From Paragordius varius (lineage: Eukaryota; Animalia; Nematomorpha), in contig OZ176053.1 of the NCBI GenBank assembly GCA_964247055.1, positions 4,278,001-4,342,000 of the forward strand: a stretch of 64,000 bases of DNA. The letters run 5' to 3'. Of the stretch, positions 22,296 through 59,591 are shown one piece after another. The notes below the pieces were generated by a model. The model had not been told where the DNA came from, ran no database searches, and was given only the letters and a program-made list of their open reading frames with translations. Position 1 is the stretch's first letter. Every line of letters begins with the position of its first letter. Both the position numbers and the translations under genes were made by a program.

Positions 22296-23696
22296 ATGAG
22301 TTCCAATCAAGCTATCCAAGAACCAAAGGCTTCAGAAAATGATTTATACAAACAGTATGGATTAATTTTGGAAAAGAAAATACGGAATTTAGAAAAACGA
22401 AAGCAAAAATTGGATGATTATAGAAGTAAACAAAAAGCTGGTCAAGAATTAAATGAAGATCAAAAAACGGCGGTTTCACACTACAACGAAGTTGTTGCTC
22501 TTTTAGAAACATTAAATGACTTACATAAAACATATGCTAATATTACTTCCGAAATATCAAGAAATAATAAAAAGTTTGCAAAGAAAATCAAAACTGAAAA
22601 AGAAACCGATCAGAATTCAGTGTTTGTCTTTATAGTGAAAATGTATTACATTTACAGCAATTTCGCAAACAATGTCATTAAAAATAAACTACTCACAATT
22701 ATTTCTGAAAATGATTTGGACAGTCTCTTAACCTTCTTGAAGTCAATTTTCTCTTATTCGGAATCTAAGTTAAAATTTGATGAATACATAACATTGGCTT
22801 CTGAAAAGGCTTTGCCAATTATAAACTATAGGTCTAAATCCAATACTGAATCAGAACTTGGCAAAATGAAAGCCGCTATTGACAAATTATGCGCCTCAGA
22901 AGCATTTGATCAAATTATGGAGCTTTGTAAATCTCTACCGCCTTTAAAGGTCGCAGCTATTAATTCAGAACCAATATCGGTTGAAAAAAGTTTGATTACA
23001 ACAACCGTTACTACACAGGTGGCGAAATCAGTAACCTCGACAGTGCCCCAAACATTACAAGCTCAACCAATTCATAATGGTAATGTGACTCATTCTCAAA
23101 ATATGACCACCACTAATATCAAACAATCAATAGCGACAACCAAACAATTAGTTTCATCTGCTTCTTCTAATAGTGGCATCTCTTTCAATGGGAATCAGTA
23201 TTCTCAACCTCATCATGGCAAAAGTGTGTCTAGTCATAGACCAATATCACACTCCCAACAACATTTCAACAATAATAATCCGAACAATATCATTAGTAAT
23301 AAATCTGTTAATGCTGCCCCTCAGCACCACCAAAGAGATTTGGTTAATGGTCATAGCGGAGGAAATATAAATTCTGCACCTATTAAAACGGCCGGAAATC
23401 AATTTGTACGTCAAAATGTTTCGCATCAAGAGAATGGATTTGTATCGAATAACCCTCATCATCCGTTGAGTCAAAGCCAGAATTTTAATAATGCATCGAT
23501 GAATGTTAACAACAACGTACCCTCCTCTACATCCGCAGTGCAAATGAACCCAAATCTTAGCAACAGTAACAATAATCCAACTTGTACCCTTAATGATCTT
23601 ATTTCCACGTTTAAAAGTAGTTTCAACTTTTTGCAGGAATCGTTTGTCGATCCCAATGAAAGACAGCAGCAGCAACAACCCCAAGCCTATTTCTAA
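22296..23696 (+). CDS. CAPRIN1: Caprin-1-like stress-granule protein, single coding exon
   Basis: LEKKIRNLEKRKQKLDDY...ELNEDQKTAV is the Caprin N-terminal domain. DLISTFKSSFNFLQESFVD matches the G3BP-binding motif region (human YNFIQDSMLD). First ATG is at 22296. Confidence 0.88.
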   Translation: MSSNQAIQEPKASENDLYKQYGLILEKKIRNLEKRKQKLDDYRSKQKAGQELNEDQKTAVSHYNEVVALLETLNDLHKTYANITSEISRNNKKFAKKIKTEKETDQNSVFVFIVKMYYIYSNFANNVIKNKLLTIISENDLDSLLTFLKSIFSYSESKLKFDEYITLASEKALPIINYRSKSNTESELGKMKAAIDKLCASEAFDQIMELCKSLPPLKVAAINSEPISVEKSLITTTVTTQVAKSVTSTVPQTLQAQPIHNGNVTHSQNMTTTNIKQSIATTKQLVSSASSNSGISFNGNQYSQPHHGKSVSSHRPISHSQQHFNNNNPNNIISNKSVNAAPQHHQRDLVNGHSGGNINSAPIKTAGNQFVRQNVSHQENGFVSNNPHHPLSQSQNFNNASMNVNNNVPSSTSAVQMNPNLSNSNNNPTCTLNDLISTFKSSFNFLQESFVDPNERQQQQQPQAYF

Positions 23697-49009: not shown

Positions 49010-51955
49010 ATATTTTATTAATACTAATATTAGCTTAAAAATATGAATACAAAAAGAGGTTGTAAATTCAACGATGAATTAATGGAAGAGTTTCCATTTA
49101 TCAAAAAAACGAATGAATCATTTGTTAAATGTTCTTTATGCGACGGGAAATTTACCCTAGCACATGGTGGCAAGCATGATCAAGCATATGGAAACACAGA
49201 AACATAAAAAATGTTTAGATATGGCGGCATCATCTTACAAAATGAGCGATTTTTTTCGAAAACCCGCTTTTGGAGAGGAAGAAAAGAATTTGGCACTAGC
49301 TGAGGGCGTGTTATCTTTTCACGCTGTTAATCACAATCATTCCTTTAGATCTATGGACTGTACCTCACAGGTTATTCGCACGTTATTCCATAAAAAATTT
49401 ACATGTGCCCGTACAAAGGCTGAAGCCATTGTGTGCAATGTCCTTTCGCCACATGCATTTTCTGAAATACAAAAAGATTTGCTGAAAATTAATTTTTTAT
49501 CCCTATACTCTGATGCATCAAATCACCATGAAACAAAATTATTTCCCACTTTAATAAGATATTTTGATTCAGAAACCGGAGTAAAAATTAAAATTTTATT
49601 TCTCTACCCGGTGAAAATTACGAAATAATATTTACTTCATTAATGCATATTCTTGAAAAAAATAATTTAAAAGACAAAATTATCGCATATTGCGCTGACA
49701 ACACCAATCTTCGGTAAAAAAGCAAGGAGGGGAACGAATAATATTCATAAATTAGCAGATAATCTTAATCACATTATTGGCGTTGGGGTGTGCAGCGCAT
49801 ATAATAGACAACGCTATTCAAACAGCTGCTGATTTGTTACCCCTAGATGTGGAAAATGTAGTTGTTAAAATATATTCCTATTTTTATTTATATACGGTAC
49901 GCGTTGAAACGCTTAAGGAATGTGAAAATGCAGAAGTTCAATATCAAAAAATGTTGGATATTGTAAACTCGTGTAGCTGTGCCAGCTATCGAAAGAATAT
50001 TATAAAAGTATGATCCTTTAAAATCCTATTTTTTATTACAGGACAAATGTCCTACAATTTTGATAAAGTTTTTAAAAGTGTTTTAAAAATATAATTATAT
50101 TTCCTACATAATCAAGCTTATCTCTTTCAAATTGTTATTAGACAAAATTTCGGCAATCGAAGTAGCCAATGAAGTTAGTAACCTAAAATTCCAATGTCAA
50201 GAAAGGTTAGAAAATAATTTATACCATTAACCATCTGCAATTTTATAAATAATTTAGAAAAGAAAGGCTTAATAAATCACCAAGATATGCTGCCCCATAT
50301 AAAAATGTTTCATACAAACTGTAAAGATTATTTGGAAGACTCGACGGTGTAATTCAATGAAATTGATCATTTTTATTGGATAACATTAAAACCCGAATTT
50401 AATTGGTGCGATGTTCATTTATCATTTGATTATATCTGCATCTCCCAAAAAGTAATCTATCGATATGTTTTCTGAAGTATCATTAGTTAAAAAATATATT
50501 AATAATGAAAAACTTAAATTATGGACAACAGAAAAAATATAGTAGAAAAGAAATGGTTAAGAATATTTCATCATTTAACAAACTATAGTCCATACAATAA
50601 TATAAAAATTGTGGAATTCGCACTCTTTTTACCTGGAACCAACGCTGGTACTGAATGCGTTTTTTACACAGTAAATCGTGGACATCGGAAAAATCAAATT
50701 TAAATATTGAAACGTTAAAGGCCATTTTATCTGTCAAATATTATTCTTGTGAAGACTTTTACAATATTTTAAAAAATGATGACAATCTGCTAAAACGCAT
50801 TCACTTAAATAAAAAATATTACTTAAAATATTGTATAAGTCTCCATAATAATTTGTCAAATTATATTTAAAAACATAAAATGGCTTTTAAAGTTTCAACA
50901 TTTAAATTTAATTTTTCCGTTTCCATACTTGATTTACTGTGGAAAAACGCGTTCAATAGCAGTGGTTCTAGGTAAAGATAATGCAAAATCTACAATTATT
51001 AAAATATTATTGTATTGAATATAGTTTGTTTAAAAATGATTATTTCAAACCATTTCTATTCGACTGTATTTTTTTCTGTTGTCCATAATTTAAGTTTTTA
51101 TAATCAATATATTTATTAAATAATGATACTTCAGAAAATAGTGTCATTGAATTACACCGGCTTGTTTTCCAAATAATCTTTTCAGTTTGTATAAATTTTT
51201 TTATATCCTGGCTATTCTTTGAGCCTTGTTTTTCTGGATGATTTATGATGCTATTAGGTAATGGTATAAAATTATTTTCTAAACTTTCTTGACTTGGAAT
51301 TTAAACATTTCAAAAAATAGGATTCTAGGCGATCATACTTTTTTAAAAGCTTTTCATTAGCTAAACTAACGCGTTTTACAATATCCAAGCATTTTAACAT
51401 CTATATTTTCCACATTCAGGGGTAACAAATCAGCAGTTGTTTGGATAGCGTTGTGTATCCGCCAATAATGTTTTGATTAAGATTATTCGCTAGATTATTA
51501 ATTTTTTTGTGCCGCTCCTTGCATTTCCACCCAGCGCATTTTGCGATGATTTTGTCTTTAAATTATATTTTCCCAGAATATTCATTATTGAAGTAAATTT
51601 TATCTCAGAATTTTAACTAGGTAGAGAATGAGAGTGGGAAATAATTTTGTGCATCAGTATATAGCGTTATGAAATTTATTTTCTGCAAATCTTTTTCTAT
51701 TTCAGAAAATGCATGTGGTGAAAGGACATTGCATACAATCGCTTTACCCTTTGTTGGTGCACAACTAATTCATTGAATAGGGTACGAATAACATGAGAAC
51801 AAGGAATAAAATATTTTTTATTTATAATGTATTTGTGATAAAAATAAATAAATATTGCAATAAATTTTGTATAAAAATTTTTGGTTGTATCCCCTAGCCC
51901 CCGCCCCCTTTCTCAGATTTGTCCGGCTTTCTCCTTAAAAAATCTGGTCACCTTG
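49010..51955 (+). mobile_element. Defective hAT, right copy (5' TIR missing), inverted relative to the left copy
   Basis: ORFs 49164-49628 (FTCARTKAEAI...LYSDASNH) and 49777-50013 are near-identical to the left copy. Ends AATCTGGTCACCTTG at 51955 and carries the same inverted extra segment (~50870-51800). Confidence 0.85.
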
Positions 51956-52892: not shown

Positions 52893-55360
52893 CTAACCTG
52901 AAAAATAAATCAAGTTATCCATTTTCCCGGCACCTGAAATAGCAGAATCTAATGAAATTGAAAAATCCCCATAGATTGACACATTTTTTTTGAAATAATA
53001 ACAAATACCTCTTAAATAAATAAAAAGAATAATATTGATCGTACCCACAATATTCCATGGTGTTTTTGTGCACAAAATGCCATACATAATAAAGTTGTAT
53101 AATGTTTTATCCAAGGGCGCAAGTAATGAGGTTTTGCGTTCAAACGATGTTATAAGGTGGGCATAATGATCTAAAAGTTTAACGACAAAAAGTGTTGCAG
53201 TATCCTCTTTTATCAATTGTTGAAAGACGGGTCGCCAATATATGGTACGAAACGTTCTCCGATCTATAAATTGGTATTGAAACAAATAAATTTATCCAAA
53301 AGATAGTTTTGAGGAATAAATGCTTTATTAATTAAATAAATTTGTCAAATACCCTGATCTTAGGACGACTTTTTTGACTATTAATGTGATAATACATAAA
53401 AATTTATTCATATTGAATTTGTTGATATTCATGTAATAATCCAACTTTAATAAATTTTCAAATAAAATAATATATTTAATATATTAAATGTTATGTAAAA
53501 TATTCAATTCAGTAACTAAAGTTAATTTATATAAATTCCTTAAAAAACTATAGGTTAATTAGTAAATTTAATATGCATGTTTTGTAAATATAGGTATTTC
53601 AGGTAAAGGAACCATTGGCTTTTTTAAAACCAAAAATGGCTCTAAAACCGTTTTATATTGAATTCTATTTTAATTTTTTTTGATAAAGCTAATATCTTTT
53701 TTCTTTGATTCATGTCTGACTTTTCATAAAAAGTAGCAAATTTTTGTTAATAAATATGCTTATATCTTGGAGGCATTTTATCCACATTGTACCTAAATAA
53801 TAGGTTATACTCAAAAAAATTTGAACGAAGACTGAAAAACTATGGAACGCAAGAAAAATTTGGCAAATTTTTTTTGAAACTTAAACGGTTCGGTTCCAAT
53901 CTCTTTTATATAAACATAATTTGACATATAGGAATATTGTGGTTTATTATCAAATTTTATCAAATTCGCGAAAAAACTTAGGTCAAATATTAATCATAAA
54001 AAATATCGAGAAAAGGCATTTTAATTATATTTATACTTTTGGCTATGAGATCCAATCGGCAGAATGCATTGCACAATGGTATAATATTAGGGATTACATC
54101 CTGTATTAGATAATTAGTTTCCATTTTATGAGAATCAATAAGGGTTGTTGTAATCTAATTATGTAAAACATACATTTAAGTAAGGTAAACAAAAACCAGT
54201 CTAACCACTTGCATTTATTCATGGTCATCGTCAATCAATTAATACCACAAATGCAAATACCAACTAGAAAAAATTGAAATTAACAAATTTATTACCTAAC
54301 GATATAAATGATACACAACTGGCCAAAATTAAAGCTTTACTAATGATGATTTTAAATATTTATAACACTTGTTAAACATTTAAGGTTATTTTTGAATTCC
54401 GTCAGAGTCACGGTCAAAACGCATTCAAGTCTTAATGTAATGTTGTTTGAGTCTTAGGGAAACACTATTGTAAACAATCTAGTTTTTTTGTCACATAAGT
54501 TTATATCAATAAAATCTCTTTTAAATTGTTTTTTAAAAAGCTGTATATATTCATCTAAATGTTAAACCAAACTATACAACTATAAATAAGACGACTTGTA
54601 CTTTTCTGTAAGGAATTAAAAATATTTTTTACACATTAGATACAAATAAAATGAATAAGCTGTAGAAACAATGTTGCATTAGAAAATATGGTAAAGTAAA
54701 ACTTTTATTGCATATAAATATTAACAAAATATTTTATTATATTCCTTATAAAGAAATATAGAAAAAAATCTAATCCAAAATAAATATTAATTACATTATT
54801 TTGCATTTCAACAATGTATTCGTCTGCTGTAAAATGCCGAGATTTATTGGACGTTTTAGAATTGTATTGAATCCAAAAATTTTCCTAATCTCCTAAATAA
54901 ATATTAATACCTCTAACCACTGTAACGCATAATACACGCCTAACCGTAAATTTTCTACCGTAGGGATATTACCATGTGCGGCATCATGCCGAAGATTAAT
55001 AACCCACTCAGGAATATTTAATTTTTTTCCGTGCTTTGTCAACGGTTCTTTAGATTCTACCAAAGTGTTTGATAGTTGTTTAGATGTTTCAACAATAAGA
55101 TTAACAAATCTAGCCAAATATCATGATAAGAAAATACCTAATCAATGCCATAGATGATATAAATGAGAATAATTCGTCGGAGGAATCATGGTAAATGGCT
55201 AAAGCTAAATCACAAGTTGCTATTATGCCAATTGATAGGGCATATCTTATAATAAAAATGCTATAAACGGTTTATTTTGGTTGACCAAATCCAATCCTTC
55301 CCGTAAATCTTCTTTATTTTTTGAATATAATTTTGAATATAGGGTTTCCATATCATCCAT
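52893..55360 (-). CDS. LAS1L: LAS1-like pre-rRNA ITS2 endoribonuclease (HEPN); 3' exons partly unresolved
   Basis: Exons 55360-55269, 55245-55138, 55109-54911, 54884-54795, and a later exon from ~53263. Motifs MALIRFVNLI, IPEWVINLRHDAAH (HEPN RxxxxH), ALQWLEENFW, YWRPVFQQL. Confidence 0.85.
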
Positions 55361-55365
55361 TCATA

Positions 55366-58151
55366 ATGGCAATCAATCGGCGTTTTTTTCAAAATCCCTG
55401 CCCCAAAGATGATAATTTTTTATTAACCCCAACGCAAATTAGGGGACATATATATACTTACATTCAAAACATATTAGAAAGATTTAAACCTGAAGTTGGA
55501 AATTGTGATGGAGGCTTATATGTTGGTTTACCTGGCGTAGCCTTTATGCTATATAAACTTTTATCACATGAGATAACAACGAAATCCAAACTATTTAGTG
55601 AAGATGAAGAAACATTGTATCATGACTATATGCTTAAATATCTTGAGATATCCTTGAAAAATATGGAAAAATATAAAACTGAAAGCAATTTTGGATTTTT
55701 ATTAGGCAACGCTGGAATTAACGTGCTGTCTACTGTCCTGTATCTTTATCTCAGCAAAACCGGTGATAAATTGTCCACATTTTCCCCGGATATTGGGAAA
55801 TATTGTTTAAAACTATTTTATATTATTAGTTGTGCTAACTTCGCAAAATACATTTGATTTATTCGTATCAGCGGCTTCAATAGGTTACCCTATTAATTTT
55901 CTAAAATGTGGTGGTGATGAATTATTTGTTGGAAGAGCTGGTTATTTAAACGCCATTTATTTTTTGGAGAAGGAATTACCGTATTTGAAGGTATTTTTTG
56001 CAAAACTTAAAAAATTTAAAATATGGGCAAATCAGAAGCTTTAACCGTATCTGCTTTAGAACCGTTTGTTTAATGAAATCAACTTTTTAATTTTGTTTTC
56101 ACTTAAATATCAAGTGTTTTATAAAAGTTTCTATCAATATTTTTTCATATAAAAGGGTATATTATGATTATGACAATGGATCGAAAACCAATTTTGTCAA
56201 TATTTAGATTAGAATAATTTTGAACCAGAAAAAATAGGATTTACTCCGTATGAATATTTGTTAAAATCATCAAAATCTCATTTATATTCTTCACGCAATT
56301 AGATATGCCATTTTTTAACGAGGCCAATTTTTTATTTCTTATAAAAAAATTTTGAAGGCAATAATTTTTTTTACTGTTTTGAGGTGATAGAAATCTTCGG
56401 TAGAAAGGGTTCTATAATATTTTAAAGTTTTTATACAGTTTCACTTTACTCTAAAATACCATAAAATACACTTAAACAAAATTTTGTTAAAATTAATATT
56501 TAACAAGGCGTGTATTTTTAGATAAATTATTTTTATGTTATAGTTTAGCGTATGTAAAAATTCCTAGAACAAATCTCGGCATTTTGCGTAAAAAATCAGC
56601 CCATTTTAGGCGAGTTTAAAGCAAATTATATTTTGAATATTGTTTATGATATAGTGATATTTTTGCAATAAACCATTTAGCCTACATTAATAAATTTCAT
56701 AATTCTCGCTAATTATGCCACTTTTCTATGTGGGGAAATTACCAAACTCGTTAAAATAATTTTTAAATGACTTGTAAACAGAGGCGTAGATAGAGGGGAA
56801 GGGGGCGGATACACCGGGCGCCATAGTTGAAGGGGCCCCGGATTTTAAAATTTTTAATTCAATTGGAAAGAGAAATAAACATATCCTCTAATTTGGCACA
56901 CAGTATAAAACATAGTTTGTGGGCCTTTAATAGCTAATTTTTTGTAATTGTTTTTTTAACTAAGAACTTTATGTATTCTACTTAAAATGTAGATTGATGA
57001 TGGCATAAAACGAACATTAATTCAAAGTATGTTAGAATCTGGATCAAAGTTGGCTCAACAATCAACTAAACCAAATAAAAAATTTCCACTTATGTATAGT
57101 TATTATGGAACCAAATATTTAGGTTAGCTCAAATAGTTATATTTTAACCCTTTTACAAAGTATTAAACCTCAGTTTTTATTTAAGCGCCATGACTATTTT
57201 TAAAATTTAAATAGGTTTTCATATAATTTACTTATTTTATTTAAACATTCTGTTTCCCATACACTTGCCTTATGATGAAATTATTTTTTGAATTTGAGAA
57301 AAGAAGCATGAATTTTCGCAATTATTTATTTGTTTATTTTTTGGGGCTCTTTATTGACCTTTTATAAAATCGGCCGATAATAAACTTATACCAACTTTTC
57401 TGTAAAGTTATCTAAAACTAATTTTTGAAAAAGGGATTTATAAACCAAAATGTTATTCATCCATAATTTTCTCATATTTTATTTTATAAATGACATCACT
57501 TATAAACACAGTTCCTAAATATGTCGTTTTTTATTAATTCAATCCTTTTTCAAATGTTAAATTACGGGATCTTTTGAATTGGCAAAATTTTCTAAAATTG
57601 GAGCTAATTTTTTAAATAATTTTACCATTAATTTTATCCTTTAAGTAACAGTACACACTCTTTAAACAATGGTCTTAAATATGTCGTTCAATGTTGCAAA
57701 ATCATCTAGAAAAATGATTTTAAAAAATGATTTGTTTTAAAGTCTTTTATACTTAAACTATTACATTTTACCATTATTTTTTAACCTTTTCAAAGTGCAT
57801 TGAAAACTGTTCATTGTTATAAATAATACTTTTAACCATTATTTTCTCCTTTAAGCAGGTTCTTAAATATGTCATTTTATGGCATTGAATCATTCCTTTA
57901 CAAATGTTAAATTGCATATTTAAAAATTGGAATGATTTTTACTTTTTAAACAAAAAATCATAAACATACTAAATATTTTGTTTTTCTTAGGTGCCGGACA
58001 TGGATTTAGTTATATCCTTTTTGTTAAATTATAAGGAAATTCTATAAAACATACAAAACTCTTTAAAAACTTGAACCATTATTAAAAATGATTTTGTCTT
58101 GTAATCTCCTACGCTTAATTTCTTGCATTTGTACCCTTTAAACATAGTTCC

Positions 58152-58199
<48 letters not shown>

Positions 58200-59591
58200 T
58201 GCGGGGCATGGAATTAGCTCAATCCTTTTACAAATGTTAAATTACAAAGAAATTCTCGAAACCATACCCCAAGGACTTGAGTTGGTTCGCGCCAGTTGTG
58301 ATGCCCTTCTCTCCTACCAATGGGCTAACGGTAATTTTGCACCGACTCTTGATGAGGTGGGTGAAGAACCTTCACTCAATAATGAACTCATGCATTGGTG
58401 CCATGGTGCTCCTGGTAATATAATATAAATGGTGGATATGAACGCTAAATAAGCGCGTATTTTTCTTAATATTTAGGTTAATTTAACAATTGCTTTTACC
58501 TTGAATTTGTTAGTAAATTTTAAGTTAAAACTTGGGTTATTCTATTAATGGGGAGTTTATGGCTTAAGTATTAGTTAAATTATTTTGGCGACATTTTGTC
58601 ATAGCATATGTAAATTGTAAAACTTTTCTTGACACTTGTTTTGGAACTTTAAAACAGTCATTGTGACAATGTTAATATTTGATTTATATGTCACATGCGC
58701 CCTCATCGACAATTAAATGTGTACCAAAATAATCTAATTTTTTTCGACCGTTGTTTATTTTTTACCATGCTAATACTATAAATATTTGCAGGTATCATAT
58801 ACTTGATGGCTAAGGCATTTTTGGTGTTTGGGGACCAAAAGTATTTGGATTGTGCAAAAGCATGCGGAGAATGTATTTGGGAACGAGGGCTATTACGCAA
58901 AGGACCAGGACTGTGCCATGGTATAGCGGGAAATGCTTACGCTTTCCTCCTTTTATACAGACTCTCTGCGTGTCAGGATGTGAAATGGGTCCATCGAGCA
59001 CACCGTTTTGCTCAATTTATGTTTTCGGGTAAAGTTTTTATCAAACTAATTGAATTTATATCTTGGAAAGTTTTAGATTTTTTAACAGTCACATTCAACA
59101 AGAATATAGGGTGGGTGGGTTTAAAAGGTTATACACAGGCATTCGTGATTAAAAAGTTTCATATGTTTAGCATGTAAAATACAAATATAAGGATGAAAAT
59201 TTAATTTAAATGTCAAAAATTATATTTTAATTAACACCAAAAAAAGGGATTAATTACATATTTTATCTAGCTAAAACATATAGGTGCTACCTTAAACACA
59301 CCTTCATTGGCAGAAAAAGCCATCTTTATATTAAATAATTGTAGTATCTGACTCCATAATAAACTATCAGACTGGTTATTACGAATTTAACCTTAGCCCT
59401 AAAATATATTACTTATATTTAATTTTTATTTTAATATATATATCGGAAATTATTTAGATATGTTCCAACATGAAAGTCGTGTACCCGATTCTCCATTCAG
59501 TTTATATGAAGGCTTAGCTGGTACTGTCTGTTTTCTTGTCGATTTACTGTACCCAGAAAAAGCAGCTTTTCCGTTTTATGATATATTTTAA
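55366..59591 (+). CDS. LANCL3: LanC-like protein (LANCL3-like), ~438 aa, 6 exons
   Basis: Exons 55366-55804, 55830-55990, 56993-57122, 58199-58414, 58792-59028, 59458-59591 (1317 nt). Motifs DGGLYVG, DELFVGRAGY, PLMYSYYGTKYLGAGHG, WCHGAPG, GLCHGIAG (Zn ligands), SLYEGLAG...FP. Confidence 0.92.
57991..58046 (+). pseudogene. Degenerate duplicate of the 5' end of LANCL exon 4 (pseudo-exon)
   Basis: ttttcttag|GTGCCGGACATGGATTTAGTTATATCCTTTT-----TGTTAAATTATAAGGAAATTCT aligns to 58199 onward with a 5-nt deletion, giving TAA at 58032. Confidence 0.8.
58152..58197. repeat. (TA)n microsatellite directly abutting a splice acceptor; others at ~2506-2532, 15784-15806, 16682-16699, 20787-20808, 28447-28482, 29340-29356, 38101-38135
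   Basis: Dinucleotide runs read directly from the sequence; run boundaries are approximate. Confidence 0.95.

Follow-up and report, generated by a model that had tools for sequence, protein, structure and literature searches.

Head-to-head LAS1 and LANCL3 genes with start codons five nucleotides apart in the nematomorph Paragordius varius

Introduction

Where can the promoters and the messenger RNA (mRNA) leaders of two divergent genes lie, when there is almost no DNA between their start codons? The question is raised by a stretch of 64,000 nucleotides (nt) from the nematomorph Paragordius varius (assembly GCA_964247055.1, contig OZ176053.1, positions 4,278,001 to 4,342,000 of the forward strand), called here the window, in which positions are counted from the first letter. 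A homologue of LAS1, a gene for ribosome maturation, on the minus strand and a homologue of LANCL3, a LanC-like gene, on the plus strand lie head to head and diverge from each other, with a gap of 5 nt from ATG to ATG. The genome to which they belong comprises 110,561,105 bases in 44 pieces, has a GC content of about 27%, and has introns of kilobase (kb) length and spacers filled with repeats.

An earlier note on this DNA, made from the letters alone, had placed the two start codons 5 nt apart, with the LAS1 frame opening at 55360 on the minus strand directly after an in-frame TGA, and the first in-frame LANCL ATG at 55366 on the plus strand. Direct reading and a script bear out the spacing, the TGA is found at 55363-55361, and the listing of open reading frames (ORFs) agrees on the LANCL ATG. 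The gene identities given in that note (LAS1L and a LANCL-like gene) are supported by matches to the Pfam families Las1 (PF04031) and LANC_like (PF05147). Each homology search took a single exon as its query; exons were joined solely within scripts that tested for open frames.

The start-to-start junction

On the plus strand, the junction reads ...ATATCATC CAT TCATA ATG GCA..., i.e., the core of the junction (55358..55368) consists of CAT (55358-55360), which is the LAS1 ATG on the minus strand, the spacer TCATA (55361-55365) and the LANCL3 ATG (55366-55368). The two genes are on opposite strands, diverge, and have starts less than 1 kb apart, and thus have the layout of a bidirectional (head-to-head) pair. 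The span to which the earlier note drew attention (55269-55440) corresponds, in the present gene models, to LAS1 exon 1 together with the first 25 codons of LANCL3. The string CAT-N5-ATG by itself has no statistical meaning; the junction is non-trivial because both ATGs are the starts, supported by homology or by logic, of two intact genes. Neither a gap, nor a run of N, nor a long repeat was found at the junction by inspection of the sequence and of the repeat listing. These are two intact genes whose true start codons are 5 nt apart, or 14 nt apart if LAS1 begins at its fourth codon (see below).

The start of LANCL3

The LANCL3 gene has six exons on the plus strand. Exon 1 (55366..55804; 146 codons plus 1 nt) begins with MAINRRFFQNP and is followed by a micro-intron of 25 nt (GT..AG, 55805..55829) at +440. 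The remaining exons (55830..59591) are at 55830-55980, 57028-57122, 58199-58414, 58792-59028 and 59458-59591, separated by introns of 1047, 1076, 377 and 429 nt, and the stop codon TAA is at 59589-59591. Intron length is thus split within this one gene: 25 nt near the start and 377-1076 nt later. A script confirmed that the model amounts to 1272 nt, i.e., 423 codons plus stop, and that every intron is of the GT-AG type.

The start codon of LANCL3 is supported by homology. Exon 1 alone retrieved 47 relatives in a search among 1.84 billion representative proteins, and in many of these the relative's own residues 2-6 align with residues 2-6 of the query. The closest relative is lanC-like protein 3 from another nematomorph, Gordionus sp., with 46% identity over exon 1 and an insertion in common; the Gordionus gene has the same six-exon layout as the window gene. 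In the alignment of these sequences (alignment A1), the initiator M1 is conserved almost throughout, and R6, F8 and N10 without exception; the LANCL3 ATG is 4 residues before the conserved R-x-F-x-N motif of the family. The window sequence MAINRRFFQNP stands beside N-termini such as MSAPKRYFVNK, MSESRRYFNN and MENTRCFANP, and has the family N-terminus M-x3-4-[KR]-R-[YF]-F-x-N; alignment A1 thus confirms what the earlier note had stated, that the LANCL N-terminus fits the starts of its family. The ATG at 55366 is also the first in-frame ATG on the plus strand: after the upstream stop there is only a TTG, at 55321, in the ORF listing. With all frames counted, a script places the closest upstream ATG of the plus strand at 55258 and finds none within 55261-55365.

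Further along the gene, pieces encoded by its exons span positions 5-75, 158-235, 226-303 and 310-349 of the LANC_like profile (best score 62.8 bits), and exons 4 and 5 carry the zinc-ligand motifs (WCHG and CHG) as HWCHGAPG and LCHGIAGN, respectively. A second LanC-like gene, which is LANCL1/2-like and much more diverged, is on contig 2 (13848720-13852377); it was considered as a guide to the N-terminus and dropped, its divergence being too great.

The third intron has a structure of its own. The region 57498-58267 contains several degenerate tandem copies of the 3′ end of intron 3 together with the first 55 nt or so of exon 4: for example, the segments 57533-57565, 57892-57916 and 58022-58054 resemble 58213-58267, and a copy near 57989 retains a look-alike of the exon start (AG|GTGC.GG.CATGGA.TTAG). 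A (TA)23 microsatellite at 58152-58197 abuts the acceptor AG of exon 4.

The start of LAS1

The conserved part of LAS1 is exon 3 (54911..55109, minus strand), which encodes the core of the HEPN nuclease with the motif RHDAAH (R-x4-H). It matches PF04031 with E 4.7e-15 and 56.3 bits (cut-off 22.7), or 55.7 bits in the search of the genome, and aligns to residues 120-184 of human LAS1L. The R-x4-H motif is intact (NLRHDAAHG in the window, DLRHELTHK in human), and exon 3 is the sole Las1 match across the 110.6-Mb genome, i.e., Las1 is single-copy.

Upstream of exon 3, exon 2 (55138..55245) is joined to it by removal of a micro-intron of 28 nt (55110..55137), which brings ...SMALI-R to FVNL, where the block matched by Pfam and the Protein Data Bank (PDB) begins. 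Exon 1 (55269..55360; 30 codons plus 2 nt) contains Met1 at 55360 and Met4 at 55351, and has the TGA (55363-55361) just upstream. Between exons 1 and 2 is a micro-intron of 23 nt (GT..AG, 55246..55268), identified by a single-intron script: when all GT/AG pairs were tried, this solution alone joined the exon with the ATG to the frame of exon 2 without a stop. Exons 1-3 together amount to 399 nt, or 133 open codons, by script. Downstream of exon 3, removal of a third micro-intron of 26 nt (54885..54910) yields QWLE-ENFW, in agreement with the WL...YW end of the domain in this family, and leads to exon 4, of which only the beginning (54794..54884) was found. All three LAS1 introns are no more than 480 nt from the ATG.

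The position of the start follows from this arrangement. A TGA is next to the ATG and, by script, the stretch from this TGA to codon 16 has its sole AG at 55313; therefore no upstream coding exon can be joined ahead of the conserved part by splicing. Nor does the frame of exon 2 offer an ATG of its own before that part. This leaves two possible starts for LAS1, Met1 (55360, with a spacer of 5 nt) and Met4 (55351, with a spacer of 14 nt), of which Met4 has the better start context (G at -3).

When searched one by one, LAS1 exons 1, 2 and 4 had no match in Pfam or PDB, each being too short or too diverged alone; their assignment is thus based on frame and splice logic. The resemblance seen by the earlier note between the LAS1 N-terminus MDDMETLYSKLYS and EWDQVTVYLF is putative, as exons 1 and 2 are too short for a Pfam or PDB match. 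The N-terminal part of the window LAS1 is short, since 67 residues precede RFVN, compared with about 93 in yeast chains and about 120 in human chains. The earlier note had proposed that the conserved Trp of the N-terminal helix was lost here and that the neighbour had eroded this end of the gene; the shortness is real, whereas the loss and the erosion are conjecture. The 3′ end and the C-terminal tail that binds Grc3/NOL9 were not found, so the model is incomplete in its 3′ part.

Promoters and leaders

The spacer is too small for a promoter or for two leaders. Any leader that is longer than the spacer (5 or 14 nt) is therefore antisense to a coding exon of the partner gene, unless the mRNAs are leaderless, are trans-spliced or have an intron in the 5′ untranslated region (5′UTR). 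The earlier note had argued in this way, that the lack of room implies either leaders antisense within the partner's exon or mRNAs that are leaderless or trans-spliced; its logic holds, and the 5′UTR intron is an option to be added. For want of room in the spacer we favour, as the best reading, an ordinary core promoter for each gene inside the 5′ end of its partner, so that the two mRNAs would cross. We regard this reading as evenly poised between right and wrong.

From such a placement we infer the positions of the promoters, the sites of transcription start and the overlap of the mRNAs. LAS1 would be driven from a candidate TATA box, TATATATA (55450..55457, minus strand), which is 90-97 nt upstream of its ATG, within codons 29-31 in exon 1 of LANCL3. 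LANCL3 would be driven from a candidate TATA box, TATAAA (55262..55267, plus strand), 99-104 nt upstream of its ATG, together with a CCAAT at 55291, i.e., from inside intron 1 and exon 1 of LAS1. This TATAAA is the reverse complement of the donor of LAS1 intron 1, and the CCAAT is in LAS1 exon 1, on the upstream side of LANCL3. Transcription would start near 55290 on the plus strand and near 55425 on the minus strand, and the two mRNAs would be antisense to each other over a length of some tens to about 130 nt.

The proposed distances are comparable to those of housekeeping genes in the same genome. Upstream of the HSC70 ATG are a CCAAT, a heat-shock element and TATATAAA (at 68 nt), and the beta-tubulin ATG has a TATAAA 95 nt upstream; by these two genes, leaders of about 35-65 nt seem to be normal in this genome. 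The predicted LAS1 and LANCL3 leaders contain no ATG apart from that of an upstream ORF (uORF) of three codons (ATG AAT GGA TGA; 55353..55364, minus strand), which overlaps Met1 of LAS1 and ends 1 nt before Met4. The ATG of the uORF is the complement of the CAT within the TCATA spacer, and the uORF is relevant only if the LAS1 leader starts upstream of 55364.

Several points weigh against crossing mRNAs with ordinary promoters. At 27% GC, TATA-like words occur at 5.85 per kb per strand, giving a chance of about 20% for each interval of 40 nt, and the lack of ATGs in the leaders is not significant (P about 0.15 for LANCL3). Nothing in crossing leaders as such would hold the ATGs of pair after pair close together yet apart; very short leaders, or a bias towards deletion that halts at coding sequence, account for this small positive spacing no less well. 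In addition, exons 1 and 2 of LAS1 lack homology support of their own.

Alternative explanations

An explanation that we hold to be unlikely, while still the best of the alternatives, is that the mRNAs are nearly leaderless: a compact two-way promoter in or beside the 5-nt spacer would give leaders of a few bases that scarcely overlap. A perfect direct repeat of 11 nt, TTTTGAATATA, occurs twice with a spacing of 12 nt (55319..55341, repeat family D2), 25-47 nt upstream of the LANCL3 ATG; it lies in LAS1 exon 1, where it encodes repeated YSK residues, and it gives two TATA-like words. These words (55324-55331 and 55335-55341), 25-42 nt before the ATG, would direct a start site at or just before the ATG, and BiP of the same genome carries a like word, AATATAATTTTG, about 20 nt before its ATG. 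The small positive spacing that recurs in other gene pairs would also be most easily explained by tiny leaders. The spacer, however, has no clear initiator word, and HSC70 and beta-tubulin indicate leaders of about 35-65 nt. Moreover, no animal is known in which leaders of less than about 10 nt are the norm for cap-dependent translation, which also counts against this explanation.

More doubtful still is the explanation that the leader is replaced or skipped, i.e., that a trans-spliced leader or a 5′UTR intron is joined at a nearby AG, with the promoters being distant, beyond or inside the partner gene. Spliced-leader trans-splicing occurs in nematodes, flatworms, rotifers, hydrozoans and ctenophores, an example among the last being Hormiphora [PMC8527503]. 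In such systems, a leader added in trans at an AG just upstream would let an ATG adjoin foreign sequence, and each of the two genes has one nearby upstream AG that could serve: 24 nt before the LANCL3 ATG and after a T-rich tract (55341..55342; from 55238 to that ATG the plus strand has no other AG), and 37 nt before the LAS1 ATG (55398..55399, the closest upstream AG on the minus strand). Two actin genes of this genome likewise have acceptor-like sequences (...ttttttag and ...cctttag) 23 and 57 nt before their ATGs. In contrast, HSC70, BiP and beta-tubulin have no AG in the 100 nt or so before their ATGs, where about 4 would be expected (background 38 per kb per strand); therefore, the addition of a leader next to the ATG is not general.

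Known leaders give this explanation no help. The published Hormiphora leader [PMC8527503] was absent from a search of the genome and from 290 kb scanned locally, and among the papers searched none links Nematomorpha with spliced leaders. A rotifer leader was not found in the genome either, in what was a weak test. Rfam had zero matches in the 64-kb window, which, with the two known leaders absent, covers known leaders only. Set beside spliced-leader systems, the present genome thus stands apart in that neither a leader gene nor a common leader came to light in these searches and that three of its housekeeping genes have no upstream AG. Furthermore, if the promoters were distant, the primary transcripts would cross the partner gene anyway.

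It is very improbable that the close spacing lacks the function read into it (through a wrong first exon of LAS1, a decaying LAS1 copy or an error of assembly), as LAS1 exons 1 and 2 without independent homology support and the missing 3′ part and usual C-terminal tail might suggest, given that the genome contains no other Las1 match and that the catalytic motif is intact, that each of the three LAS1 micro-introns restores the frame and family motifs, that the junction has no gap, N run or long repeat, and that a local mis-join is argued against by the occurrence of similar pairs elsewhere in the genome.

Other gene pairs and known systems

The earlier note had called the layout striking in a window whose other intergenic regions are kilobases long. 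Locally this is a fair description; in the genome as a whole, the layout has parallels. The Pfam matches of BUD31 (on the plus strand, with profile position 1 at C3:9937882) and of RPL32 (on the minus strand, with profile position 1 at C3:9937807) have edges 74 nt apart, and RNase H2A (C1:4979866, plus strand) and a fucosidase (to C1:4979689, minus strand) have theirs 176 nt apart. Both pairs were checked by the coordinates of Pfam matches only; once the N-terminal offsets typical of such domains are allowed for, both are consistent with starts that nearly touch. The LAS1/LANCL3 pair is thus an extreme case of a wider tendency in this genome to pack divergent genes start to start, and is not singular. 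A screen for tight divergent ORF pairs in 264 kb was discarded, as it returned mostly antisense ORFs in long exons, such as those of DOCK and ATR.

Pairs of this kind invite comparison with the bidirectional promoters of other animals. Trinklein et al., in 2004, are said to have found many human head-to-head pairs with starts less than 1 kb apart and bidirectional promoters. As in those pairs, two unrelated genes of housekeeping type diverge here from one short common region. The classic pairs, however, have tens to hundreds of non-coding bases and separate leaders, whereas in LAS1/LANCL3 it is the start codons themselves that are 5 nt apart, and therefore the regulatory DNA of each gene must coincide with coding sequence of the other. 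In compacted genomes of eukaryotes, such as those of microsporidia and nucleomorphs, overlapping transcription was reportedly described by Williams et al. in 2005. There, transcripts begin inside neighbouring genes and intergenic DNA has been squeezed out, as is proposed here for LAS1/LANCL3; those genomes are compact throughout, whereas the present one has 110 Mb and the squeezing is confined to the starts of genes.

The pairing of LAS1 with LANCL3 is not conserved in Gordionus: no LAS1 was found within 10 kb of the Gordionus LANCL3 (a locus of 27.7% GC), and none on a metagenome contig.

Micro-introns near the starts

The four micro-introns of the two genes (23, 28, 26 and 25 nt, all GT..AG) are at 54885-55829, within about 480 nt of both ATGs. 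It may be a habit of the genome that introns near packed starts are 23-28 nt long and later introns kilobases long. In the literature, no organisms other than myxobolid myxozoans and Dicyema were found to have introns of less than 30 nt [PMC13644364, PMC6736024, PMC6543705]. The window introns, at 23-28 nt, resemble these in being ultra-short, with little signal beyond GT and AG. In contrast to the situation in myxozoans and Dicyema, micro-introns in the window share a gene (LANCL3) with introns of 0.4-1.1 kb. The window genome also differs from that of D. japonicum in GC content (27% versus 36.7%), and the closest relative of its LANCL3 is from a nematomorph, not from a myxozoan or Dicyema.

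A tentative generalisation, which we think less likely to hold than to fail, combines the packed starts with the micro-introns: divergent ATGs would be 0-30 nt apart, core promoters would lie in each other's coding exons, introns within about 0.5 kb of the common start would be 22-30 nt long, and later introns would be of kilobase length and filled with repeats. Under this rule, LAS1/LANCL3, at 5 nt, would be among the tightest cases.

Significance

If both starts are used as read, then the information for the promoter and leader of each gene sits in the coding sequence or the splice sites of its partner, and this happens in a genome with room to spare elsewhere. LAS1/LANCL3 and its sister pairs would then be a natural test bed for the minimal size of a two-way promoter in an animal, for coding sequence that doubles as core promoter, and for the coupling of expression of unrelated genes by crossing 5′ ends. 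The start-to-start layout would, moreover, be linked with the unusual micro-introns near gene starts. Should the mRNAs prove to be trans-spliced or nearly leaderless, this would be new for a little-studied lineage.

Other observations

In HSC70, BiP and beta-tubulin of the same genome, the stretch nearest the ATG is very poor in G. Searches of the genome, neither with a positive control, revealed neither the R&R cuticle domain of arthropods nor the cuticle-collagen domain of nematodes (Col_cuticle_N). Proteins of the window had no exact counterpart in a protein look-up, from which records of this very genome may be missing. Elsewhere in the window, a long single-exon ORF on the plus strand (22296-23693) encodes a homologue of Caprin, with a weak match to Pfam Caprin-1_dimer and a tail rich in Asn and Gln; its closest relatives are the caprins of arthropods, at about 30% identity. 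Two ORF fragments, at 49164-49628 (plus strand) and 51620-51769 (minus strand), share the peptide ...AIVCNVLSPHAFSEI.KDL.KINF...; they probably represent a single transposase-like element in two decayed copies.

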